From assembly GCF_006345805.1 (NCBI RefSeq), contig NC_043003.1:100812001-100876000 (forward strand): a stretch of 64,000 nt of DNA, given 5' to 3'. The notes beneath the pieces are model-generated. The model had not been told where the DNA came from. It made no database searches and worked only from the letters and a program-made list of their open reading frames with translations. The translations under genes were made by a program, and so were the position numbers. Positions 6,171 to 64,000 of this stretch are shown here, piece after piece; position 1 is the stretch's first letter; the number at the start of each line of letters is the position of its first letter. Source of the DNA: Octopus sinensis (taxonomy: Eukaryota).

Positions 6171-6859
6171 AAGTTAATCAAACCAAATTTTCATCATTTC
6201 AAGCCACTCAATGAGTGTTTCTGCAAAATTCAGTGAAAATCTGTTCAGTTGTTTTCCAGTAATTTTGCAAACACACAGACAAACAAAGACAAGTGATTAC
6301 AATGCCCTGCTTTCACTTATGCGCACAGGGTAACAAAACAAATGACCAACTGTTTAACCAAGTTAAACAAACAATTGATTAGTTAGTTGGATATTTAACC
6401 AATTGACTAATAATAAAGGAGTGGAATTGAAGTAGTGTATGTTAATAATATTAACGTAATGACTCTCCCTAGACACAAATAAACTATTCCATTCTAAGAG
6501 AAAATAGCTCAGAATTGTTCTCCTCCAGCTAGCTTGGAGTCAAGTTGTTGCAGTCAGCAATACAGAGTAGAGTTCTCCAGAGAACTATGTAAGGGTCATT
6601 ACCATTTCAGATGGAGTCCCAGTGATATCAGCAACTTCAAGAAATACCTCAATACTCTGACAAAAACATAACTTTAAGCTGCAATATCCCATACACTCTA
6701 TCAACCATAAAAACCATTGCAGCTTGAATAAATAGCAATGGGAATATTTTAATCTTAGCATCTGAATATGTGACAGATTTTAGAACTGAAGTGAGTTGTG
6801 AAGTATGATTTTATGCATATTTTACTAAAATGACAGCATCATGCAAACATTCTAATAAC

Positions 6860-7545
6860 ATCACCCTAGCAGTTGAGGGAATCTGTGGAAGACCTGGGAT
6901 GGAGTCGTGAAGCACGACCTTCGAACTTTAGGCCTCACCAAGGAAATGACTAGTGACTGAGACTTTGGAAATATGCTGTGCTTGAGAAGACCCAGCAAGC
7001 CAAATGAGACCATAACTTCGTGGCCTATGCCAGGAGCGTAACCAGCCCACTTATGTGTACCTTTTCCTTCTTTGGACACTAAACTCTGCTTGCGAAGACC
7101 TGTTGAGGCAAGTGAAATCAAAATCAAATTCGATGACTGGCATCCATGCTAGCGGGGTGCAAAGAGCACCATACGAGTGTGATCGTTTCCAGAGCAGCTA
7201 ACTGGCTTCCATGCCAGTGGCACGTAAAAGGGCACCATTTGAGCGTGATTGTTACCAGTGTCACCTTACTGGCACCTGTGCTGGTGGCATGTGTAAAAAG
7301 ATTCGAGCGAGGTCATTGCCTGTACTGCCTGACTGGACCCCGTGCCGGTGGCATGTAAAAAGCACCCACTTCACTCTCGAAGTGGTTGGTGTTAGGAAGA
7401 ACATCCAGCTGTAGAAACTCTACCAGATCGAGACTGGAGCCTGATGCAGCCATATGGTTTGTCAGCCCTCAGTCAAAATCGTCCAACCCATGTAGCATGG
7501 AAAGCGGACGTCAAACGATGATAATGATGATGATGATATATAATA
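6860..7545 (+). mobile_element. 5'-truncated RTE-clade LINE 3' end with long 3' UTR
   Basis: Encodes ..KTWDGVVKHDLRTLGLTKEMTSD..WKYAVLEKT, followed by a UTR with gccagtggcacgtaaaa repeats and a (GAT)n tail shared with 16527 and 50540. Confidence 0.7.
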
Positions 7546-7989
7546 AGCTATGTGTCTATATGTATTTTTTTTTGTTTTTGTGAGTAACTCTTTAGCATTT
7601 GAAGCTGTTAAATTTGTTCAATTGATAAGATTTTTACTTTCTAAATCATTCAAAATGAGCCGGTGTCATTCTGAAATAGTTTTCTGAATTATTCAACAGC
7701 ATTTCTACTCTCTTGCAGCATCTCTACTTAATTATTCTGTTTGTCTTTTGCATTTGAAAGTTCATTCAAATCCTTTCTGTTTTGTTCACAGTTTTCAATT
7801 CTTTTGATTTTGTTCCAATTGTTTTCAAATTTTGTGTATTGATGTTTTGTATGCTAATTATGGAAATTCATTTTTACCATAAATTAATAAATAAAAAGTT
7901 AATAGCTTTTAAAGTTTGCAAGTTTTGGGTAATTCTAGCCAATTGAATGCACATACATATTGGTGTCCGTTTCCTTAGTAACAAGCCAA

Positions 7990-9750
7990 GGTATAGATGA
8001 GCTTCAGATAGGTTCCTCACAGGCAAGACACATAAGTATAAAATTTTCTGGGAAGGTAACAGTGACAGGGTAGGTGGTGTGGGCATACTTTTTGCAGAGA
8101 AATGGGTGGATAAGGTCATAGAGGTAGTCAGATTTTGCTATAGAGTACTTAAGCTCAGGCTAGTCTTGCAAAATAGTATAATGACAATTACCTCTGCCTA
8201 TGCCCCACAAGCAGGCCTACCAAATGAACAAAAGGAGCCCTTTTATGATATTCTTCTGCAGCCTACCTCAAAAATGAGTGACAATGAACTCATCTTTGTG
8301 GCATGTCGGACGGCAGCCTGGTATCTTCCATGGTGTACATGGGGGCCATGGAATTGGTTCCTGAAACAAAGAGTGAACAAGGCTACTGGAGTTTTGTGAT
8401 GAAAATAACCTGTTGATCTGCAGCACCAACTTCAGGAGGCCAGCCAGCCACCTGATAATCTACCAATCAGGTGACTATGCTCGCCAGATAAATTACATTT
8501 TCACCAGACAGCAGGATGCATGGTTGCTCCTGGTGAAGAATGTACCCCACGGCATAGACTAATCATTAGTGACCTTTAGACAGAAGGATGCCAAGCAGAC
8601 CAATCTGGAAGAGAAGAATTTGGAAGCTTAAGGACTTTTCATATGGTCAGAGATTCAGGGACATCCTAATTGAGAAATTTGATGAAAGAGAGGAGGAGCT
8701 ACAGACTTGTGTCATAGAGGACTACTGGGAATTCCTGCGGGACAGCTTTCTGAGTGCCACAGACCAAAGCTGTAGCTGCTGCCATCCAGCCCAAGGGTGA
8801 CGTGATGGTGGAACGATGCTGTCATTAGAGCAAAGAAACAGGCCTGGAAGAGTGGGGGTAGCAGGTAACTGTATCAGATAGCCAGAATTGAAGCTAGGAG
8901 ACAGGTATATCTAGCCAAAGGAGAAGCAGAAGAACTTTGCTTTATGTTCAGCAGTGTGAGGACCAAAGACTTGAAGTGTTTCAGATTGCAAGACAGTGTG
9001 TAAGAGAAAATTGTGATGATATAGGAGAGAAATGTGTCCGTATGGATGATGGAACACTTGCATTTAATGATTCTGCAAAGAAAATGGCTTGGAAATACTA
9101 TTATGAAAGACTGCTGAATGTAGAGAAAGAATGAGAAGATGAGAATCTGTCAAATGCTGGCCCAATTGAGAGACTAGCTATCTCAATTGATAGTACCTTG
9201 GTAGATAAAGCAATTAAGAATATGAAGACAAGGAAAGCCTCCAACTCTTCAGGAATCACTGCTGAGATGTTTAAGATATCTGGTGGTGTGGGTTATAGTC
9301 TAGTCACTCGTATTATAAATCAGATGGTTCATGAAGGAGTCATAACCAATGACTGGTGTAGCTGCACCATAATCAACTGCTACAAGGTTAAGGTGATGCC
9401 TGAGATGGAAATAATTACAGAGGTATTAAAATCGCAGAGAGGGTCATAGCCTAACTAATTAGGGAGAAAGTTAGTCTCGATGAGATGCAGTATTTCTGTT
9501 AAGGCAACATTTCTGGTAAGTATGCTATATTTCTGGTAAGGCAGCTACAGGAGAAATACATAGCCAAAGATAAACCTCTGTACTTGGCTTTTGTTGACAT
9601 GGAGAAAGCCTCTGACAGGGTCCCCCCAATCCCTTATCCAGTGGTCAATGTGGAAACTGGGGATAGACAAGTGGTTAGTGAGAGCTGCCAATAAGGTGAG
9701 AGTGGCCAATGAGTACAGTGAAAAATTCCGGGTACAAGTAGAGATTCACC
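7990..9750 (+). mobile_element. Decayed RTE-clade LINE (APE endonuclease plus N-terminal RT)
   Basis: GVGILFAEKWVDKV and ITSAYAPQAGL (APE); K..KASNSSGITAEMFK and YLAFVDMEKA.DRVP (RT); many stops and frameshifts. Confidence 0.85.
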
Positions 9751-9947: not shown

Positions 9948-10335
9948 GCGTGGAGGTGCAATGGCCCAATGGTTAGGGCAGCGGACTCGCAGTCGGAGGA
10001 TCGCGGTTTCGATTCCCAGACCGGGCATTGTGTGTGTTTATTGAGCGAAAACACCAAAAGCTCCACGAGGCTCCGGCAGGGGGTGGTGGCAACCCCTGTT
10101 GTACTCTTTCACTCCAACTTTCTCTCACTCTTTCTTCCTGTTTCTTGTACCCGACTTTCTACACAACCGCTGAGCCTGGATGCGCATTCATCCATCCGTT
10201 GATGCTCTCGGTGTCGGTGGGGTGACCTGCTATCTCTTCTGCGGGTCTTATGAATGGCAAAGGACCACGTTTCGGACTTCTCCCATCTTGTGAGCTCTGG
10301 GACGAAGACCGTTTGCTCAACAGCAACAGCAGCAG
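9948..10335 (+). mobile_element. Young tRNA-derived SINE (Ala-CGC-like head)
   Basis: A box TGGCCCAATGG at 9962-9972 and B box GGTTTCGATTCC at 10005-10016, then about 300 bp of non-tRNA body and a (CAA/CAG)n tail. CpGs are retained. Confidence 0.75.
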
Positions 10336-12299: not shown

Positions 12300-14350
12300 T
12301 AGAATCTAATGGCAAATCTCCTCTCTAGCTCATATGTCCACTCACTTCTGTCTGTTGCCACTGCCCAAAGCAAAAGAGGGCCACACTGGTCCTACTTCTG
12401 TTCACATAAACTTCTCACTTCTCCTTTTCTGGTAGGGCTCTCTCAGCTATTGACATCACTGACACTTTCCTCCCGGTTCACCTCATCTCCCCCCACCCAT
12501 CCACCACCATCGAGCAAAATGCAGTACTGTTGTCCATCAGAAATTTATCCACAGGGCCCCACTTCAGGAATACCTCATTCAGGATTTGTGCAACCTCAAC
12601 TGCAGTGCCCGTCTTAATTTCCCTCCATATCGCTGTCTGACTCAGTCCACAGTTAACCATCAAGAAATATGTCCCCTGCTTGGTAGTGTATCACATTCAC
12701 TGCCAATTGTCTCCAGTTGTGCTCTACTGAGATGTTTCCCAGCTCATGCACACCTGGAGCAGGGTCAGTTGACACCTATAACAGCTCCTGACCACTTTTG
12801 GATACTCTACCTAGTGACATTGGAGTCAACTTTCCTGGTAAGATACAGGGTTCTATCCATGCCCATATGATGCATGGTGTGCAGTCTCCTTAGTTCCAAG
12901 TCACCTAGCTGACACACTGCAGCTATCCCTTGCTTTAAATCTTCCAGCACTGCCAACCAAGCCTTTTTCACCCTTGTGAAATATCTGCCTTATTCCTTTC
13001 TGAGGACATAAAGACCATGCTCACCTTCAAACCAAGTTTGGCTGCTAGTTCACCCAGTGCTTCACTAACATCTCTGCAGCCCCTTTTGTTTGAACCCTCC
13101 TTTCATCAGTGATCACTGATCTCACCCATCCAAGCACAGTAGCCAAATCATTTTGGATTTCAATAGAATTCACCTCCATCTCAGAGCCAGATTCACCCAC
13201 TTCAGCAGAGCATCCAACTCAGACATGTTGATGTGGTTGTAGTCATCTGCTTTTCTGAGCCAGGTTGCATCCTCCATTTTGACACCCCTGATTTCCAGGA
13301 CAACCCCTATTGCTATGCATCACACCATATGGTCCTGTTCTAGGATCTCCTGCATCATAGCCACCATCCTCTCTCCCACTTTGTCTCATCTGCTTGTTAC
13401 TTGATGTAGCTGCATGCTGTTCAAAGCCATCCTGTGATTGGATAGTAACCCACTAGTCTCCCACACATCAAGAATAGTGCCCAATTCTGAAATCTCATTT
13501 CCTCTCTGAAATATCAACACACCTATTTCGTAGCTTGATCCCCAGTGCAGCTCCTCCAACCATTGGCTCCAGTGGTTTCGCAGTTAGCCTGATCTTCATT
13601 AGGTGATCTATGATCTCTGTGATAGACACTACAGTCTCGTCTACCAAGATCTCATCTGTATAGGAATTGGTGGTCTTTTTGACCGTGTCCACTTTTCCCA
13701 GGATAGATTTGAGCACTGTTGTCATGATCTTTGGTGCAGAATTCAACCTGAAACTCAGTCTAGTTAACCAACATGTCTGGCCCTTATGTCTCACTAGCTG
13801 ATACTTCCACAATTTCTTACTCATGTGAGCTGCAGATATGCTGACTTTAAGTCAACAATTGTTGCAGCCCTCATCATCTGTCTCCATTCATGCAACATCT
13901 CTCTGCAGACACCAGCTACCTCACCACCCGTGTGACAATACATGGCCATTCAGCTCTCAAAAGTCCAGTACAGCTTGACCTTGCCCTTCGTTGGCTGCAC
14001 CATTGCTATTAGTGGAAACACTCTGCTCTTCACTTCCTCCTTCCATGGGATTAGGATATCCCCTTTGATCCATCACTGACCTTCCTTCAAAATCAGTTCT
14101 GGCATCTCCTTTTAATGTATGCTGATAACAGCGTAGCCTGTTCCTCAGCATTGAGGGCTCCCCCTTTCCAATGCAACTCAACCATTTCCCTAGGGCTCTG
14201 CCCACTCTCTTGTTGCAGATTCACAGTGCATGACACCCCTGCACCATCAGATGAAACCATGTCTCCACTAACAATGACACCACCTAGGTGGTAGATTGCA
14301 TCCATACCCATCATCACATCAATTTCATCTACTACATGGTTGATCACAAT
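12300..14350 (-). mobile_element. Decayed Ty3/Gypsy-like LTR element pol (PR tail, RT, RH, IN)
   Basis: DVMMGMDAI (protease tail), WLTRLSFRLNSAPKIM...SYTDEILVDE (RT), HTMHHMGMDRTL and KFLMDNSTAF (integrase). Same family as 59021-59314. Confidence 0.75.
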
Positions 14351-14529
14351 TACTCACAGCCTTTGTGTTGTGCCCTGCACTGCCATCTCCACTTCACTGC
14401 TACCCTTTCATCTAATTTCATTGCTGTTGACTGCCCTAACACTACTTACCACCTTCCACTTTTTAGTCACCTTTGGGGGACATTGTATGGCCCATATCCA
14501 CGAGGGATTTGAATACCTTTCCTTTAACC

Positions 14530-15600
14530 AAGACTTCAACTATAGGTAGCAACTGTACAAGAACCTCTACTTGTCCATGGGGAAGTTTGAGAGGAAGCAA
14601 CTTTTTCCAGGGCCTTTTCCCTGATGAAATAGATAGAAAAACTAAGAAAGTGATGACCGTGAACAAGGAACTGCACTCTAAAAGCAATATTGATAGACTG
14701 TATGAGGAAGAGGCCTCATAGGATGCAAGATCTGTATTGTCAACGAGGAAAACCGTCTGGGATGGTATGTCAAACAGCAAATTGAACCCTTGCTTGCTAC
14801 TGTTAGAAATAGCAACATAATACCTACCAAAAATGTGACACACCCAAATCGAAGAGAAAGACAAGACCAACATCTAGAGATGACTAAGGAAAAGTGATCT
14901 GAAAGGATGTACCAAGGCTTTGAAATGTTGTACCCAGGAACAAGCTCTGAAAACTAATTACACCAAGTTCCAGATAGATAAGAGCAGTGAATCGCAACTT
15001 TGTAAGATGTGTGACAGCAAAAACAAAACAATAACACATGTTATAACAAACTAGTCCAAAAGGAATAAACAAAGGAGGCATGATAACATGGATAAGTTTG
15101 TTTACTGGAGATTGTGTGAGAAGTGCAAGGAAATGGTATGAACATGAACCAGAAGGCATCATTGAAAATAATGAATATAAGATTTTGTGGGATTTTACAA
15201 TCCAATGTGACTCTCTAATAGATACCCAAAAATGAGACATTGTTGTAGTGGGTAAAAAGAAAAATTAAACTAAAATTATAGATGTTGCCATCCTGGGGAT
15301 GTATGTGTAGTGACAAACAGTTGGAAAAGGTGAAAAAATACAGACTGCTAAAAGACAAAATTGTAAGAATATGGGCAATGAAGAGAGAGTAACTGCCATC
15401 TCAGTAATTGTAGGGGCACTTGGAGCATTAACAACCAAATCAGATACATCAAATCTGAGATTGGTACTTGGATGTTAAGTATCTTCTACAATACTTAACA
15501 TCTAGGTACCAAGTTCTATAATTTGTGGAAAGAGACCTATGACAACAAATAGGATTAACTGGAGTAAATAAGATCAAGAGATCTAAGAAGTAAAATGTAA
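14530..15600 (+). mobile_element. R4/Dong-like LINE, 3' fragment (zinc knuckle plus REL endonuclease)
   Basis: SNIDRLYE..., ALKCCTQEQALK, CKMCDSK..TITHV, HEPEGIIENNEYKILWDFTIQCD, then a PD-type motif with IIDVAIP. Confidence 0.8.
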
Positions 15601-15759
15601 TAACTTTTAACAGTCACAAGTTTTGTGGAAGAGCACAATCAATTCTAGGACTTGAATTGTATTTATTTCATCAAACCTCACAAGGGTGAAAGTCACCTTA
15701 GCAAGGTTTGAACTTAGAACATAAAAGATAGTGCAAGGTGAAGAAACTTAAGCAATATG

Positions 15760-15765
15760 TTTATT
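15760..15765 (-). terminator. Candidate polyadenylation signal of the PDE gene
   Basis: Minus-strand AATAAA about 94 nt after the stop codon; a second copy lies at 15667-15662. There is no transcript evidence. Confidence 0.3.
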
Positions 15766-15858
15766 ATCTTCAATTAAATTCATATTCTTGATAAAATGCA
15801 GAATCCAGCTCATTTCTGTTATTTTTCCTATTTCATCTGGTTTCTTGACATCACATCT

Positions 15859-15928
15859 TTAACGGGTTTCTGTCTCCTCATTAGTCTTACATTCTTTTGC
15901 TAAAATTTCCCAGTTTTCTAAGTTCTTC
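15859..15928 (-). CDS. PDE10A: PDE10A-like phosphodiesterase, last coding exon (K)KNLENWEILAKECKTNEETETR*
   Basis: Acceptor ttttcatttgcag is phase 2, matching the previous donor. NL..W aligns to PDE10A DNLSQW. TAA stop at 15861-15859. Confidence 0.8.
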
Positions 15929-16384
15929 CTGCAAATGAAAATGAAAGGAAAAGTAACTCAAAAATAATCATATCTTATCTAAATTCAAATACAGGTTTGA
16001 CCCTTAATAATAGCATTACTCTTTCTTTTTCTTTAAAACCAACAGACTTAAATGTTTAAATATTTGAGATGAGTTATTGCTGAGTTATGATACATCAAGC
16101 TTTCAGACTACTTCAGACGTTATTTTTCATGTAAACATTTTTAAATCAGCATTTTAACTCTAAAAATGAGGTCAATAATCTGAAAATTAAGAGTATACGA
16201 GTGTTTTAAAAGAATAGAAATAGAAAAGACTTGTGACTTTGTATTCTTTGACAAAAGATTTTTGGCTACTGCAGGAAAGTACTTCAAATAGAGTGAAGTG
16301 CAAGGTTATGTGGCTTCAGCTTAAATTTACTCCAAACTCTCAGTTATTTCTAATGGCAGTCTTTCCATAATGATGTTTTTTTAC

Positions 16385-16860
<476 letters not shown>

Positions 16861-17709
16861 TATATATATATTTACTCCTCTTTTTATCACTGTTTTCCCA
16901 CATAAAGCTGCATATCATTTTCTCTCTTCTATTTCTCTATCTACTACTTGATTCTTTCTGCTAAACCCATCACTGTCACACCACCAAATAGGAGCTGATT
17001 TAGACTGTTGTAACCCGTTTAACCTATGTCCATATAGAAAAATTTATATGTGAAGATAATGTTGACAAGATTAGGGAAAAACAGAAATAGTCAATTTTTA
17101 GTGCTTTCTGAGATGTTAATTCTCCTGAGATTTCATTGTAAGTCTTCAAGAAATGCATAGTAGAACAAGGAAGATGTCACTGGTAAGTTACTTCAATTAT
17201 ATCACTTTTGAGAAGAACATGAACTTCATTCATCCCGTATCTTTTTCTCTAAAAATTATGGGTAGCTCATTTTTTAACATTTATCAAAACAAAATTCATC
17301 ATTCAGATTTGTTAATTATGATCATTCATTATCTAAAAAACACAAAACCTTTAAATGTTTATTTCTTACTGAGATAGGAAGTCAATTGTTGGTAGGGAGA
17401 GATATTGAATTGAACACATAATTATTGGTACTTATATTAATCAACAAAGTTGCAATCAATGTGAGGACTTCTTTAAGATCTTTTTTACAGAGCAAACTTT
17501 ACAGAAGACAACACAAGTAAGAAACACTAAGTAAACTTTAATAAAAACCAGGATTTAAAAAAATAAACTCAAAAACATATCTCTGCAAATGATGTTTCTT
17601 CTAACAAGACAAATGTTAGGTGAGACATACAGTTGATTAAACTGGCTCAAATGTAATCCACTCGGCACTGCTGTTAAGTTTATTTGCAGAAAGTGCCTGG
17701 TTTATGTGT

Positions 17710-52821: not shown

Positions 52822-55034
52822 GGAAACCCACAGTAATCCCATAAACCAGCCTTCCTCATGAAAATATAAACTGCTCTACATCTTAGAGTGTGCTTCTTCA
52901 CCGGATATATATATATACTAGCATTAAAGACCCGTCGTTGCCGGGTCATAGTGCTAGTGCATGTATATATGTGTATATATATATGTACATATTACATGTA
53001 CATCTATATATATACATCTACACATAAAATACAAAATACAAAGTTATATCTTGATATCGCTAGTGATAACAATACTCAAAATATATAACAGACTGCAATT
53101 GTTAGCCCGTCTCTTGTAATTTCGATTAATTGTATCTTGTCCTCCCTCTTGTATAGAAGTGTGGCTACAATCTAGCCTACCTCTACTTCGGGAAGGGGTG
53201 GGGGGCATTAAAAATTTTTTTCCAGGACGTCCTACGTCCCAGATATAAAGGTAAAAATAAAATATTTCCACTTTGCAAGTTCAAGTCAAGTACTCCCTTG
53301 CACGCTCCGTTGATTTGAACCTTGCTTCTATTGTGGCGAATTTACCACCTCTGATTAGATACCTTTCATAGTCACACCAAGACACTTTTCGAAGGTGCTT
53401 TCCTCCATGTGTTCAAATCTTCTTATTTCTCTAGATTGTATACTTTATAGACAATAATCTTTTCTTTAATTTAATTTTTTATTATCCATCTGGACTATTC
53501 CATTTCTGCACACTAATTTTATTTTTAATTTATTCCCATTCATGTGAAACCACTTCAAATCATTGATGCAATTTTATACCAATTGCTATTTGAATGGAAT
53601 TGGTTGTGTAGTTCTCAAGTTTTAGGGAAACACACAGACAGACAGACAGACACACATTCTCAGAGTGACCAGTCCGTCAGGCATCCATTTGACACCGCTG
53701 GTCACAGCACGCTGTCCCCTCCTCTCTGGATCACGCCTTTCTCATCCACGTGATCCCAATCGTCCTCCTGAAATCATAACTCCACCATCGTGGAGGCCTT
53801 CCGGGTGGTCGTTTCTGCTTGCGTGGGTACCACTCGACAACTGCGCAGGTCCACCGATTATCGGTGAGCCGGGCGACGTGTCCAGCCCATCTAAACTTGC
53901 TGCGTGTATACTCTGCGATGACATCTGTGGAAACCCACAGTAATCCATAAACCAGCCTTCCTCATGAAAATATAAACTGCTCTACATCTTAGAGTGTGCT
54001 TCTTCACCGGATATATATATATACTAGCATTAAAGACCCGTCGTTGCCGGGTCATAGTGCTAGTGCATGTATATATGTGTATATATATATGTACATATTA
54101 CATGTACATCTATATATATACATCTACACATAAAATACAAAATACAAAGTTATATCTTGATATCGCTAGTGATAACAATACTCAAAATATATAACAGACT
54201 GCAATTGTTAGCCCGTCTCTTGTAATTTCGATTAATTGTATCTTGTCCTCCCTCTTGTATAGAAGTGTGGCTACAATCTAGCCTACCTCTACTTCGGGAA
54301 GGGGTGGGGGGCATTAAAAATTTTTTTCCAGGACGTCCTACGTCCCAGATATAAAGGTAAAAATAAAATATTTCCACTTTGCAAGTTCAAGTCAAGTACT
54401 CCCTTGCACGCTCCGTTGATTTGAACCTTGCTTCTATTGTGGCGAATTTACCACCTCTGATTAGATACCTTTCATAGTCACACCAAGACACTTTTCGAAG
54501 GTGCTTTCCTCCATGTGTTCAAATCTTCTTATTTCTCTAGATTGTATACTTTATAGACAATAATCTTTTCTTTAATTTAATTTTTTATTATCCATCTGGA
54601 CTATTCCATTTCTGCACACTAATTTTATTTTTAATTTATTCCCATTCATGTGAAACCACTTCAAATCATTGATGCAATTTTATACCAATTGCTATTTGAA
54701 TGGAATTGGTTGTGTAGTTCTCAAGTTTTAGGGAAACACACAGACAGACAGACAGACACACATTCTCAGAGTGACCAGTCCGTCAGGCATCCATTTGACA
54801 CCGCTGGTCACAGCACGCTGTCCCCTCCTCTCTGGATCACGCCTTTCTCATCCACGTGATCCCAATCGTCCTCCTGAAATCATAACTCCACCATCGTGGA
54901 GGCCTTCCGGGTGGTCGTTTCTGCTTGCGTGGGTACCACTCGACAACTGCGCAGGTCCACCGATTATCGGTGAGCCGGGCGACGTGTCCAGCCCATCTAA
55001 ACTTGCTGCGTGTATACTCTGCGATGACATCTGT
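52822..55034. repeat. Near-identical 1106-bp tandem duplication
   Basis: ORF pairs 52888/53994, 53044/54150, 53544/54650 and 53665/54771 have identical translations at a fixed 1106-bp offset. Confidence 0.95.
53670..53925 (-). mobile_element. RTE LINE C-terminal fragment (second copy about 54776-55031)
   Basis: KFRWAGHVARLTDNRWT..WYPR..KRPPGRP is the typical RTE ORF2 end. Confidence 0.8.
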
Positions 55035-57779: not shown

Positions 57780-59020
57780 CTAAACCACCTCCTCCATGAC
57801 TTTCTTGCTCGCACTGAACAACATAAATTCCACTCACTCTTTCACCTTGTCCCACCCAGTGCCACTACAGCCACTCCTCCCTCTCCAATCCACTCCTCTC
57901 CAATCCACTCCTCTCCAATCCACTCCTCTCCAATCCACTCCTCTCTCATCCTCATTCCCACCCTCCCATACACCACTTCCTTCTTCATCATCAACATCTC
58001 CCTGACCAAACTCTCAGCCCTCAATGTCTCCAATGCCACAAAGATATCATCATCAAACCAGCTGACGAGGATGGACCTGTAGTAGTGTGGTGTGCAGACC
58101 TTTACAGGGCTGAAGCTTTCCGTCAACTTCAAGACACCACCTTCTATTGCCCTCTGCTCTCCAACCCCATGCCTAACTACCAACAGACTGTGTCCTCCAC
58201 TATTCATGACCTCATTTTCTTCTGTCTCCCTCCCACTGTCTCCAGTCTCATTGTCTGTACCCCACGCATCTCTACTATTTATTTCCTTCCCAAAATTCAC
58301 AAACCCAACAACCCTGGATGCCCCATTGTCTTCACCATAGATTTCCCCACTGAAATGATCTCCAAATACCTCAACTGTGTCCTTGCACCCCAAGTGGCTT
58401 CCCTCCCCTCACACATTCACAACACCAATCATGTTCTCCGTCTGTTTAACTCTTTCTCTTTCCCTTCAGTCCCCTCTCAACTTCTGTTCACTCACGCCAT
58501 TAAATCTTTGTATACGGTGATCCCACACAACGAAGGCCTTCAGGAGTGGCCATGGGAATGAGGATGAACCCAACTATGTGAACCTATTTGTTGGCTGTGT
58601 TGAAGCCCAAATATTCTCACAATTCACTGGTCCCACTCCTGAGCTATACAGTCATTATATCTTTGACTGTATTGACGTGACCTCACTCTCCCGTGAACAT
58701 CTGGACACTTTCCTCTCTTTTGTCCAAACATTCCATCCTGCCCTCAAATTCTCCTGCACTATCCCTAACTCTTCCATCAAATTTCTTGATATTTCTGTCA
58801 GCATACACCACTCCGCTCTCATTACCTCTACCCACTACAAACACACTGACTCACACTCATACCTTAACTTCTCCTCCCACCTTACCCACACCACGCTCTC
58901 CATCCCATACTCCCAAATCCTCCATCTACACAGGCTCTGCAGTGATGACTATGACTTCAAGACTCAGTCTCAACTCATGGCTGACCACTTCACCCTACAT
59001 ACTATCTACACTGCCGTAGC
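57780..59020 (+). mobile_element. Penelope-like RT fragment
   Basis: YFLPKIHKPNNPG.PIV, KSLYTVIPHNEG, VAMG.RM.P.Y.NLFVG, KFLDISV and KHTDSHSYL. Includes a 15-bp minisatellite (ccactcctctccaat, about 4 copies, 57880-57945). Confidence 0.85.
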
Positions 59021-59314
59021 CCTGAATCATATGGGCATGGATAGGACGCTGTGTCTCGCAAGGAGGATTGACACCAATGTTACCTGATAGAGCATCCAGA
59101 ATGTGGTCAGGAACTGTGACAGGTGTCAATCCACCAACCCTGCTCTGGGTGTGCATGAGCAGGGAAACGTTTCGGTAGAGCACAACTGGAGACGATTAGC
59201 AGTGGATGTAACACACTACTGGCAGGGGACATATCTCTCCATGGTTGATTGTGGGCCAGGCCGGATAGCCATTTGGCAGAAATTGAGGACAGGCACTGCA
59301 GACAAGATGGTGAG
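59021..59314 (+). mobile_element. Integrase fragment of the LTR family seen at 12300-14350
   Basis: LNHMGMDRTL, CDRCQS and NWRRLAVDVTHY..YLSMVDCGPGRIAIW. Confidence 0.75.
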
Positions 59315-59581
59315 TGTCTCGACTGCTGTTATTTGATTGTCTCGACTGCTGTTATTTGCCTGCAGTGCAGCTGCATGGAGTTCTGTTCTGTTTGCGGCAT
59401 GATGTGTTCAGTGTTGGTTTTTAGTTAGTCGAGACTGTAGCAACTCACAGCATAAAACTGTTATTGTGTTGAAGTTTGGTTTTGCTTACAATTTAGCAAT
59501 CTTTGTTTGTATTGTAGATTGCTGTATTTTTAGTTGATTAAAACCTTTTAAACTTAGATATTCCAGTTTGGGTTTATAACA
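59315..59581 (+). repeat. 5' LTR (5' end truncated or rearranged)
   Basis: Matches the 3' LTR over about 205 bp, with about 7 substitutions and a 4-bp indel by eye. Ends ...tttataaca. A 23-bp tandem duplication lies at 59315-59360. Confidence 0.88.
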
Positions 59582-59582
59582 A

Positions 59583-59600
59583 TTTAATCAACTAGAAATA
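59583..59600 (+). promoter_or_regulatory. PBS-position sequence complementary to the element's own LTR (candidate self-priming site)
   Basis: tttaatcaactagaaata pairs with 59525-59542 (17 Watson-Crick pairs plus 1 G-U). There is no TGG. Confidence 0.65.
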
Positions 59601-62600
59601 GCTAGAGAGAGAGAATGGACAGCAAATTTATAAAACCAAATTTGTTCACTGCTGATCCAAGTTTAAGTCAAGCTTCAAAAGAATGGAAATATTGGTTCAG
59701 AACTTTTATAAATTTTTTAGAATCATTTCCTACTGAACCAGCTATCACTGATGAAAGCAAGCTTAGGTGTTTAATAGTGCCCATAGATAAAGACGTTTAT
59801 GAACTCATAAGCGAATGTGAGAATTACGCAGAAGCAATTCAAACTGAAACCCTTGAACGTTATTTTTGCATGACACCTTTTAATGACATATAAACAAGAA
59901 CCAGGTCAATCAGTTGATGACTATTTACAGAAATTGAAACGACTAGCTAAAGATTGCAGGTACAGAGCAGTGGACGCTGAGACCCACAAAATGAATCTGT
60001 TCGTGATGCATTTATCTCGGAATTAACATCATCTTCAACTCACCTTAGACTTTTAGAAAATATTCAAGATGCGGCGATAATTTTAGAAGCTATATTTAAC
60101 CAAGCTCGCATGCTGGAAGTTGCTCAAAGTAATTCCGAAGTGTATAAAAGCAGTCAGACTGCTATAAACAGCCAGGGAAGCTGTTTGTCAATGTTTATTC
60201 CACGTGAAGAAGACAAAATCTCAATTCCTGACGGAAACACAGCTTGTGCAGCAACAAAATGAACTCAAAACTCCTGCCCCTTTTGTGGATCTAATGATTT
60301 TCATCCGAGGTTTAAGTGTCCCGCTAGGCGGGGAAAGTGGATATTTTGGTCATTTTGCTAAAGAATGCCAGTCAAGTAACCGCAAAAATTTCAATAAGAC
60401 ATCAGAAGCTCTTGATGATGGCAACTTTGCCATGGTTTTATGCGAAGGTGGGGCTACTACTAAAGTTAATTATACAATAATAGTTGATGGCACGAAAGCA
60501 TTTGCTTTGATTGATACCGGCTCTACTATGAATCATATTAGCAAAGACTTTGCAAAGAAAAACAAATTGGTGGTGAAGTCCAAAAGGAATGAAATTAACA
60601 TAGCTGTCAATAGAAATCGTTCCCAAAACGACAGTTATTGTTTGAGTTCAATTGAACTTCAAGGAATAATTTACGAGCAGGTAAAGCAGGTGGTATTTGA
60701 TAATTTGTTTGTAGATATAATTTTAGGGCAAAATTTCTTAAAACAGCATCAACATGTAAAAATTACCTTTGATGGCACCCCCCCCCCCTCGTTACATTTG
60801 GGAGCTCTAAATTGCATTAAAAGTGACATTACACACAAAGTTGTTTGAAAATTAAAACTCTGACTGTAAACCCATAGTTACGAAATCAGTCCACTAATAA
60901 TGAAAAATTTATTGCTGATACTAAAAGCCGAGATCTGGCAGAAGGGGTAACTGAACCCAGTGTTTCTCCCCAGTGAGCCCAGGTATTGGTAATATCAGGA
61001 GAAAATCATTGCAAGACACTGTGTATTGATTATAGTGAGGACTATAAATAAGTTTACACAATTAGATAGATATCCACTGCCAAATATGCATGACGTGGTC
61101 ACAAAAACAGCTCAATTTAATTATTTTAGCACACTGGATCTCAAAAGTGCGTATCATCAAGTTGAGATTCTAGTTGAAGAACGACTTTCAAAGCACAAGG
61201 AAAATTATATCAACGCAAACGTATTGCTTTCAGACTTATAAATGCAGTGCCCTGTTTCCAGAGTGATCGATAATATAATCGAAAGCCATAATTGTAGAGT
61301 TACTTTTGCATATCGACAACATAACTGTGTGGTAAATCGGAGGAAGAACATGATCGAAATTTAAAACATTTTCTTCAAGTTGCTAAAGACTGTAATTTAA
61401 CTTTTAATGATGCCAAATACATTTACAGCACTACACAGATTCGATTGCTTGGCTATGAAATTCAAAATGGTAACTTGAAACCTGACCCTGACCGGGTGAA
61501 AGCCCTTACTAGAACTACCTATTCCTAGTACCCACAAAGCATTGAGTTGAATTGTTGGTCTATTTGCGTATTATTCCAAGTGGATTCCAAAATTCTCTGA
61601 CAAGATAAAACTGTTGGTTGATACTAAATATTTTCCTTTGGGTGAAAGAGCCTTGTCTAGTTTAAAAACTTTATGAGATGATTTAGCAGATGAAAGCCTT
61701 CCTTTTTCAATAGAAACAGACACATCAGAGGTAGCTATATCTGGCATTATACACCAAAATGGAAAGCCAAGTGAGTGTTGTTATTCTTGTATTGAAAAAG
61801 AGGTGACAGCGATTGTAGAATCTGTGAGAAAATGGTCTCATTTTCTTCTTGGACATAACTTCACACTGATCAAAACAGTGTTGCTTTTATGTTTAATTGT
61901 CAAAAGCGCAGTAAACCTAAAAATGAAAAGATAATGCATTGACGAATCGAACTAGCCCAGTATAAATTTGATATCATTTACCACAAGGCAAGTTTAATGT
62001 TGCATCTGATGCTTTATCGCGTACCTATTGAGCAGCTACGACTGGTAATGAACTGTAACCTGTTCATGCAGTGCTGTGTCATCCTGGGATCACACGGTTG
62101 TTTCATTATATTAAAGTTAACAATTTACCATTCTCAGTAGATGATGTAGTGCGTATAACTAACAATTGTGTAATATGTTGTGAAGTGAAGCCTCGCTTTA
62201 CTAAAACCTCTGTTTCATCAGGAATTAAATCTACTCAAGCTTTAAAAAGATTGAATCTTGATTTTAAAGGACCCCTACCTTCAGTGTCAAAGAACCATTA
62301 TTTTTTAACTGTTGTGGATGAGTATTCACGTTTTTCGTTTATTTTTCCCTACACTGATACTAGTGCTCATTCTGTTACTAGTAATTTGAAGGTTTTGTTT
62401 AATCTTTTCGGATTTCCTGCTGTTATTTATAGTGATAATGCTAAATGTTTTGTATCCAAAGAACTTAAACAATTTCTGTATGATAGGGGTGTAGCGATTA
62501 CTCATTCTACTGTGTACAATCCTCGTGGAAATGCGCAATGTGAAAGGTATAATGGAGTAATATAGAATTCCATTAAATTGGCCTTATGTAGCAGAAATTT

Positions 62601-63222
62601 ACCAGTTTCTCAATGGAAAGTCGTGCTTCCAGAAGTTTTACATTCACAATGTTCATTATTATGCACAGTAACTAATGAAACCCCACATGAGAGATTCTTT
62701 AAATTTCCCAGATATTCTATGTGCAGTGTTTCTGTTCCTACTTGGTTAATGCAAGGACCTGGCAAAGTGTTTGTTAAACTGTATGTATGCAATTAGTAGA
62801 TGAAACCCAATTGGTACAGATTAACCCTAACCACGGGAGGGTGCAGTACCCAGATGGACGTGAAAGTACTGTGTCCATTAGAGATTTAGCCCCTACTGGC
62901 AAAATGACTGAGGAGTATCAGTTAAGTAAGGATCAAACTGATGTTGCTGAGACTGATCATACTCAAGTGCATGAACACCGTGGTGGTTTTTCAGATACCA
63001 TGAGTGATTCTGTCCCACCTAGACCAGCTCAAGAACCAGAACCTCAAACTACTTTGCACTGGCGTTCATCCAGAACAAAAACCATTTCAGAGACGTTAAA
63101 TTTATGATTGATGATGTGATATGCTTCTGAAATGCCTCGTTATTACGTTGTCAAGATTGGCTCATTTTATGTTTGTATTTTGCATTTTATTGGTTAATTG
63201 TTCTTGTTCTTTGGGGGGGGGT

Positions 63223-63472
63223 TGTGATTTTAGTTTTGATCATGTGATTTTGATTGTCTCAATTGCTGTGCGGAGTTCTGTTCTGTTTGCGGCACGACAT
63301 GTTCAGTGTTGGTTTTTAATTAGTCGAGACTGTAGCAACTCACAGCATAAAACTGTTATTGTGTTGAAGTTTGGTTTTGCTTACAATTTAGCAATCTTTG
63401 TATTGTAGTTTGCTATATTTTTAGTTGATTAAAACCTTTTAAACTTAGATATTCCAGTTTGGGTTTATAACA
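63223..63472 (+). repeat. 3' LTR, 250 bp, TG...CA
   Basis: Begins tgtgatttt one base after the PPT and ends tttataaca. Confidence 0.92.
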
Positions 63473-64000
63473 TACATATATATATTTATGCGCATACACA
63501 CAGATATACAGAGACGTATACATGCTCGCGCCTTCCTACACACATGGGCACACACACAGAGGCACATGCATGCACCTACATATACATGTGTGACACTCAT
63601 ACATGCACATATACGCAGACATGCACACATACACCCCCACACAGTCACACTCATATATATGTATATCTGTACAAACACACACACACAAAATGAATATTGC
63701 ACATAATAAAGTTTAATACCAAATCCATCCTCTCATTTCTTAATTGATATGTGTGTGTGCATGGTTAGCTAACACACACTGTGCCCAGCTAATATGACTG
63801 GAAAATAAAGTAAATGAATTCTCCAACGAACTGTATATTGCTGTCTAACAATATTCACATACCATTTAAGATGACATCATTGTAAGCAAGATGGTTTTGG
63901 TGTCCATCAAGAGAGCTTCTTCAAGGTCATTTTATTATTTTTTTCATCGTCATCATCATCATTTAACATCTGCTTTCCATGCTGGCATGGGTTGGACAGT

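Follow-up and report, generated by a model that had tools for sequence, protein, structure and literature searches.

A compact animal Ty3/gypsy lineage with an LTR-complementary sequence at its primer-site position: a predicted case of self-primed reverse transcription

A degraded octopus retroelement and the pairing at its primer-site position

The 64,000-nt stretch of Octopus sinensis DNA analysed here (the window) contains a degraded copy of a compact LTR retroelement, lying on the forward strand and made up of the following features.

59335..59581, + strand: 5' LTR without its first ~28 nt, delimited by the direct repeats it forms with the 3' LTR and by alignment to the window's 3' LTR and to the LTRs of two related copies, L004 and L001
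59525..59542, + strand: proposed self-primer TATTTTTAGTTGATTAAA, the LTR segment that pairs with the primer site; perfect core at 59531-59542
59537..59542, + strand: hexamer ATTAAA, forming the last six bases of the primer segment (A(A/T)TAAA in relatives)
59549..59576, + strand: hairpin in the U5/R region, between primer and primer site, present in both the MFE and the centroid fold
59566-59575, + strand: GU-rich run GTTTGGGTTT, inside that hairpin
59582, + strand: one-base spacer (A) that sets the primer site apart from the CA at the LTR end
59583..59600, + strand: proposed primer binding site TTTAATCAACTAGAAATA, complementary to 59525-59542
59604..59614, + strand: (AG)n microsatellite, downstream of the primer site and ahead of gag
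59615..63104, + strand: degraded gag-protease-RT-RNase H-integrase coding region, recognised from the ORF list, three-frame translation and Pfam
63213..63221, + strand: polypurine tract of nine G residues, followed by spacer base T63222
63223..63472, + strand: 3' LTR (TG...CA), in direct repeat with the 5' LTR

Domain order, TG...CA LTRs and the polypurine tract, together with a target-site duplication seen in the relative L006, identify the element as a member of Ty3/gypsy (Metaviridae). Pfam detects an aspartyl protease, RVT_1 and rve in Ty3/gypsy order, the gag portion carries a CCHC knuckle, and the closest protein matches come from Octopus vulgaris and O. sinensis. The reverse transcriptase (RT) is partly deleted, and numerous stops and frameshifts interrupt the coding region. 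Over aligned blocks the LTRs share 95-97% identity, and indels set them apart. A preliminary description of the locus had correctly placed the end of the 5' LTR (...ATAACA at 59581). This LTR is not complete, however: its first ~28 nt are missing, and a 23-nt tandem duplication at 59315-59360 (TGTCTCGACTGCTGTTATTTG plus 2 nt), which overlaps the LTR start, stands in for them. With its frameshifts, partial RT deletion and truncated 5' LTR, the window copy is an old, dead fossil, and the interest of the locus lies in the family to which it belongs.

The 5' LTR ends in ...TTTATAACA at 59581, and the terminal ...GGGTTTATAACA is common to the 5' and 3' LTRs of the window. The ending ...ATAACA recurs in three independent LTR copies (the window's 3' LTR at 63472, the 3' LTR of L001, and L004), with unrelated sequence after each. 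One base separates the terminal CA from the paired site and one base (T63222) separates the G9 tract from the TG of the 3' LTR, a symmetry of spacing pointed out in the preliminary description that is borne out by the sequence.

Reverse transcription in almost all LTR retroelements and retroviruses is primed by a tRNA taken from the host. In the octopus element, the position at which such a tRNA primer site (TGG...) would be expected, one base past the terminal CA, is occupied by a sequence complementary to the LTR itself. The bases at 59583-59600 form 17 Watson-Crick pairs and one G-U pair (T59530 with G59595) with those at 59525-59542, with no mismatch or G-U among the 12 LTR-proximal pairs (59531-59542 with 59583-59594), so that the 18-nt pairing with one G-U and 12 perfect pairs described initially is confirmed in both coordinates and bases. 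The core of the duplex is formed by AGTTGATTAAA in the LTR and TTTAATCAACT in the primer site, and the same inverted repeat can be extended to 29 nt at 83%. No TGG occurs between the LTR end and the gag ATG at 59615, the first one after the LTR being found only at 59616, in the context of that ATG, and no tRNA gene lies within the 64-kb window.

Chance was assessed in two ways. When the LTR was shuffled 20,000 times with its dinucleotide content preserved, the longest perfect complement anchored at the first base of the primer site was 11 nt, a length seen in three shuffles; 12 nt was never reached. As RNA, the 76-nt segment folds at -25.5 kcal/mol (z = -6.2), and none of 200 shuffled sequences did as well; folding also predicts the inner structure of the enclosed segment that had been suggested previously. 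Rfam returned no family above threshold for this DNA, the microRNA-hairpin matches scoring 15.9-25.3 bits against thresholds of 55.5-195. The pairing is real and not a product of chance.

Conservation and covariation of the pairing among relatives

Relatives were traced through pieces of the integrase and protease and through a gag alignment. The second octopus copy, L004 from O. vulgaris, is 85-90% identical to the window element at the nucleotide level; its (AG)n tract (about 9985-10000) is roughly twice as long as that of the window, and the tract is absent from the non-octopus lineages. L006, from ENA sample ERZ25067582, has an integrase 58% identical to that of the window and is a nearly intact 4.1-kb element with 95% identical LTRs, a 5-bp target-site duplication (ATTTG) and Pfam matches in gypsy domain order, including the RNase H domain PF17917. 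The same ENA sample yielded L023, in which the LTRs are 100% identical, a 773-aa ORF is present and the gag ATG directly follows the primer site; a target-site duplication was looked for in L023 and not found. L022 is an element of the spider Trichonephila clavipes, and L008-L021 represent a family of 13 JGI metagenome contigs, for which the LTR boundary was set by homology with L006, no contig spanning a complete 3' LTR end.

All relatives with a readable junction are compact (about 3.8-4.2 kb), and the integrase pieces of the lineages in which pairing was found are 54-65% identical to that of the window. Outside the junction comparison stand the 5'-truncated copies that lack a 5' LTR junction (L001/L002 and L003) and the elements whose LTRs are not definable (L005, L007, L024 from Clonorchis, L025 and L026). 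The named hosts of integrase relatives are octopus, a spider and a fluke. Other queries contributed little: a protein query with the gag N-terminus had no indexed words in common with any protein, exact look-up of the window gag ORF gave no record, no relative was found among the IMG/VR viral contigs, and the protease piece gave two matches only, one of which led to L004.

The same layout is found in every relative with a readable 5' LTR junction, that is, in L004, L006, the JGI family, L022 and L023. In nine representatives, 15-18 of the 18 primer-site positions can pair with the LTR of the same element, the arms and changes being as follows.

L004: LTR ...AGTCGAT..., primer site ...ATCGACT...; C-G replaces the U-A pair of the window, whose arms read AGTTGAT / ATCAACT
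L006: LTR AGTTGAATAAA, primer site TTTATTCAACT; U-A has become A-U
JGI family (L008-L021): LTR AGTTCATTAAA, primer site TTTAATGAACT; G-C has become C-G, with G-U in some copies
L022: LTR TTCTAAGTCATTAAAA, primer site TTTTAATGACTTAGAA; 16 perfect pairs, a one-base deletion being matched on both arms
L023: LTR TTTTATAAGTTGATTAAA, primer site TTTAATCAACTTATAAAA; 18 perfect pairs

L004 also carries an A at the position of the window's G59595. Close to the 3' end of its primer segment two positions are mismatched, and both of its LTRs show this state (GATATAAA) while the primer site is unchanged. The preliminary description had named intact copies with a normal TGG site as one finding that would speak against its reading. 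No TGG primer site was found in any relative with a readable junction, and the younger, nearly intact copies carry LTR-complementary sites instead; the pairing persists throughout the family and outside it, with the compensatory changes that this description had proposed to look for.

In an alignment of 13 sequences, 85% of cells pair, a value that falls to 17-41% when the partner columns are slid by 1-3 positions. Changes on both sides were seen in 7 of the 18 pairs, a count matched by one of 500 shuffles, and the observed covariation score was reached by none of the 500. RNAalifold, run unguided on the same number of sequences, recovers the same helix and places a hairpin behind it; 10 pairs of the predicted structure show changes on both sides. 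When the whole LTRs of three families are aligned, the best-conserved blocks are the primer segment and the last dozen LTR bases, and a scan of the retrieved loci for inverted repeats anchored on the hexamer picks out these sites and only two others.

We therefore regard it as scarcely credible that the pairing arose by chance as an inverted repeat of AT-rich DNA, or that it is a microRNA-like hairpin derived from a transposon and without any part in replication. The region is indeed AT-rich and shows weak resemblances to Rfam microRNA precursors, but all of those matches fall far below threshold, the shuffle tests speak against a chance origin, and the comparative data, with the same position kept and compensatory changes made in lineages whose integrases are 54-65% identical, contradict both versions of the idea.

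Three further regularities describe the duplex and its surroundings. First, in all lineages the complementarity breaks off abruptly after 16-18 nt. Second, the 3' end of the primer segment is a hexamer of the poly(A)-signal type, which reads AATAAA in L006 and ATTAAA in the window, L001, L022, L023 and the JGI family; its positions do not co-vary, whereas those further 5' do so freely. Third, the spacer between the terminal CA and the primer site is a single A in the window, L004, L006, the JGI family and L022, and four bases (ATAA) in L023. A hairpin that starts at the base after the primer is common to L006, the JGI family and L023; behind it come 9-19 unpaired bases ending in ...ACA plus A, and then the primer site. 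Neither the single folds nor the consensus fold contain additional duplexes with sequences beside the primer site of the kind that make up the 'pretzel' of Tf1-type elements.

Some observations on the relatives stand apart from the pairing survey. A degraded JGI subfamily with the gag start MNSKSIKP (L021 at about 2700-2750 and L019 at about 1360-1410) has the same pair changed on both sides to a G/A mismatch, the arms reading ATTGAA in the LTR and TTAAAT in the primer site. Just upstream of the truncated relative L003, positions 7170-7560 are dense in long inverted and tandem repeats with units of ~120-180 nt. The contig L025 contains two copies of a more remote gypsy relative, which are 99.7% identical (6186-9060 and 14007-16882) and lie 7.8 kb apart, with a reverse-oriented integrase fragment between them.

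A predicted self-priming mechanism and its alternatives

We consider it likely that this compact (~3.8-4.2 kb) lineage of animal Ty3/gypsy elements starts reverse transcription without a tRNA, by self-priming of the kind used by Tf1. The start of the minus strand defines the end of U5, and the primer must therefore pair with the bases immediately past the LTR. Because these bases are not complementary to a tRNA 3' end, vary between lineages and match the LTR of their own element, Tf1-type self-priming is the simplest reading. According to this scheme, the genomic RNA would begin within the LTR, ~57 nt before its end and around 59525, and its first 16-18 nt would fold back onto 59583-59600 through the pairing seen in the sequence. 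The RNA would then be cut after ...AUUAAA at 59542, presumably by the RNase H of the element as in Tf1, and the new 3'-OH would prime the minus strand, with A59582 copied first and the LTR end after it; the geometry of this step can be read directly from the DNA, and its chemistry is predicted from the Tf1 precedent. The exact abutment of LTR boundary and duplex would follow because minus-strand synthesis starts at the duplex end. Finally, plus-strand strong-stop DNA would stop at the end of the primer RNA, as in the Tf1 scheme.

The position of the RNA 5' end is a key element of this proposal. A sharp stop of the complementarity at 16-18 nt is what one would expect if the primer were bounded by the 5' end of the RNA, and it is this limit that leads us to predict a transcription start near 59525. 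No consistent TATA box precedes this predicted start at a distance of ~30 nt. An initiator-like TCAGTT motif in the JGI family suggested that transcription might begin exactly at AGTT, which would give an 11-nt primer as in Tf1; this idea was dropped because the 5-7 bases upstream of AGTT also pair and co-vary in all lineages.

Alternatively, priming might occur in trans or from the 3' copy of the segment, on the same or a co-packaged RNA, with transcription starting downstream of the segment in the 5' LTR. The segment is indeed repeated in the window's 3' LTR (63416-63433, with no complementary site downstream), and no clear promoter motif places the start upstream of the segment. However, a cut at the 3' copy would split U3 from R on the template that is needed after the first jump, the 16-18 nt limit is more simply explained by a 5' RNA end, and Tf1-type elements use the 5' copy (PMC10085805). 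We judge this arrangement to be improbable.

Self-priming from the 5' end also offers an account of how the two arms have stayed matched. If plus-strand synthesis copies the primer, as in the Tf1 model, then a change in the LTR segment would be passed to the primer site in later generations, and matched changes between lineages could therefore have arisen without two independent mutations. The primer segment in the LTRs of the progeny would come from the parental 3' R and the physical primer from the 5' R. Thus, the state seen in L004 may be the product of a parent with a mutated 3' LTR, which would leave both progeny LTRs changed and the primer site as it was, with conversion of the site following in later rounds.

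The lineage-specific nature of the sites is also what counts most against a cellular small RNA as the primer, be it an internal tRNA fragment, a piece of a mitochondrial tRNA or another RNA ending in ...UUAAA-3', with the LTR match incidental or a decoy. Such an RNA would end in ...UAGUUGAUUAAA-3' and would be expected to track the differences between the primer sites of different host species. Half-tRNA priming does have a precedent in Ty1/copia elements (PMC6317226), but the sites differ between lineages at several core positions and in each case match their own LTR, and one conserved cellular RNA therefore cannot match them all. Moreover, no tRNA ends in AAA-3', the window has no tRNA gene, and its Rfam matches are sub-threshold only. 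A match to a tRNA fragment had been raised in the preliminary description as a finding that would undo its reading; as far as a single tRNA fragment shared by all lineages is concerned, these own-LTR matches speak against it. Overall, we think a cellular primer very improbable.

A more substantial alternative is that the duplex is a regulatory hairpin rather than a primer. HIV-1 provides a precedent, with a hairpin that masks its 5' poly(A) signal. By analogy, the duplex would mask the 5' A(A/T)UAAA so that polyadenylation takes place only in the 3' LTR, and the true primer would be something else. In keeping with this idea, the invariant hexamer lies inside the paired segment, the complementary partner is present only past the 5' LTR, and selection for a hairpin would produce covariation as well. 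The idea nevertheless provides no reason for the duplex to start one base past the CA in five lineages, and it leaves the elements without a primer site: they have no TGG, and LTR and duplex lie too close together to accommodate one. For these reasons we regard masking without priming as unlikely, while masking as an additional role of a self-primer is likely. The hexamer is probably the poly(A) signal in the 3' LTR copy, and at the 5' end the duplex would hide it. The GU-rich run GTTTGGGTTT follows the hexamer, and some 10-30 nt of R would thus be available to the first strand transfer.

A bolder version of the self-priming proposal, which we put forward tentatively and would rate slightly below even, is that a single stretch of 16-18 nt at the start of R combines three functions: primer for the minus strand, poly(A) signal in the 3' LTR, and off-switch at the 5' end when paired. 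This arrangement would belong to chromodomain-less gypsy elements of animals, in molluscs and arachnids at least, and would be independent of the Tf1/sushi group. With the poly(A) hexamer lying inside the primer, a 250-bp LTR would seem to have an economical means of distinguishing its two copies, 5' and 3', from each other.

Relation to known priming systems and the DNA around the element

To our knowledge, self-priming is the main exception to the use of tRNA primers and has been shown by experiment only in elements of fission yeast. In Tf1, Tf2 and Tj1, the RNA folds back so that its 5' end pairs with the primer site, and a cut is made at the end of the duplex (PMC10085805; PMC4600332; PMC5341516); from the demonstration in Tf1 the mechanism has been inferred for Tf1/sushi chromoviruses of fungi, vertebrates and non-seed plants. 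The octopus lineage resembles this group (Tj1, Tosmo, Tcn1, sushi-ichi, Maggy and Skippy, among others) in having no tRNA site and, in its place, a site complementary to its own LTR, in having more structure in U5 beside the duplex, and in the Ty3/gypsy order gag-PR-RT-RH-INT. Tf1 requires a U5-IR-like stem, as the title of Lin and Levin 1998 states (cited in PMC10085805).

The differences are equally clear. The duplex measures 16-18 bp here and 11 in Tf1, and a hairpin straight after the primer stands where Tf1 has its three-duplex 'pretzel'. The primer of the octopus lineage ends in a hexamer of the poly(A) type, no chromodomain accompanies it, and its hosts are invertebrates (octopus, spider) rather than fungi, vertebrates and non-seed plants. 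The position of the primer 5' end and the RNase H cut have been demonstrated in Tf1, whereas those given here are predictions. The absence of a chromodomain noted initially holds by Pfam for the C-terminal pieces of both the window element and L006; none was found in the listed integrase relatives either, all of which are shorter than 300 aa and therefore weak evidence on this point. A PDB search with the gag-PR-RT of L006 returned only Ty3 and caulimovirus RT, with Ty3 the best RT match and no sushi-derived protein, matches that are too weak for placement in a clade. The octopus lineage thus shares the central feature of Tf1 and lacks two features of the Tf1/sushi group, the chromodomain and the 'pretzel'.

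Self-priming has also been predicted for the TAR lineage of plant Ty1/copia elements (Houba, Osr-1) (PMC6317226; PMC6934838). As here, the prediction was made from sequence alone and lies outside Tf1/sushi; the TAR elements belong to another superfamily, with the copia domain order, and to plants. The Tf1-like reading offered in the preliminary description is thus supported, whereas its view that self-priming would thereby be extended to another lineage proves less sweeping than it seemed, the TAR prediction having come before (PMC6317226).

In general build, the octopus lineage resembles the Mag lineage (Mag, SURL, Jule and mosquito cqgypsy), which consists of compact, often single-ORF animal gypsy elements without a chromodomain and also has short LTRs and target duplications of 4-5 bp (PMC3286476). 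Described Mag elements have primer sites complementary to tRNA-Leu, tRNA-Ser or tRNA-Arg (PMC3286476), unlike the octopus lineage, which has no tRNA primer site. A conserved pairing of U5/R with the surroundings of the primer site is likewise reminiscent of the U5-IR and U5-leader stems and the poly(A) hairpin of retroviruses; in those, however, the stems flank a tRNA site, whereas here the stem is itself the primer site and there is no tRNA site.

The literature that we searched, which did not extend to most subscription journals or to Repbase, contained no report of self-priming in animal elements of this kind. What appears to be new is therefore the occurrence of a known mechanism, in variant form, in a lineage and among hosts from which we found no report of it, the principle of self-priming being already established. 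All checks that were run came out in favour of the self-priming interpretation, which they support as a well-founded prediction from comparative sequence data.

If it is correct, a second self-priming lineage would mean that tRNA-independent priming is more widespread than is assumed or arose more than once, the octopus lineage being distinct in its invertebrate hosts, its different helper structure and its lack of a chromodomain. It would also supply natural sequence variants for defining what RT and RNase H require in cutting an RNA duplex. Hosts use 3' tRNA fragments against tRNA primer sites (reviewed in PMC7472051), and self-primed elements would be blind spots for this defence, escaping control aimed at such sites. 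At a practical level, LTR-calling pipelines that rely on tRNA primer sites may miss or down-rank such families.

The sequence around the window copy has features of its own. Directly upstream of the truncated 5' LTR, positions 58085-59336 contain ORFs of another retroelement, one RT-like (..YFLPKIHKPNNPGCPIV..) and one integrase-like (..CDRCQ..LAVDVTHY..LSMVDCGPGR..) and running into the LTR junction. Pfam gave no match at E <= 0.01 for these ORFs; the RT-like stretch ..YFLPKIHKPNNPGCPIV.. is one that we take to be typical of Penelope-like elements, and the whole looks like a nested or rearranged insertion. On the other side, the 3' flank (63473-63700) is low-complexity CA/TA-rich sequence with spurious ORFs on both strands. 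Further away and unrelated to the finding, the window contains a pair of 300-nt direct repeats (52839-53138 and 53945-54244) that are 100% identical and lie 1106 nt apart.
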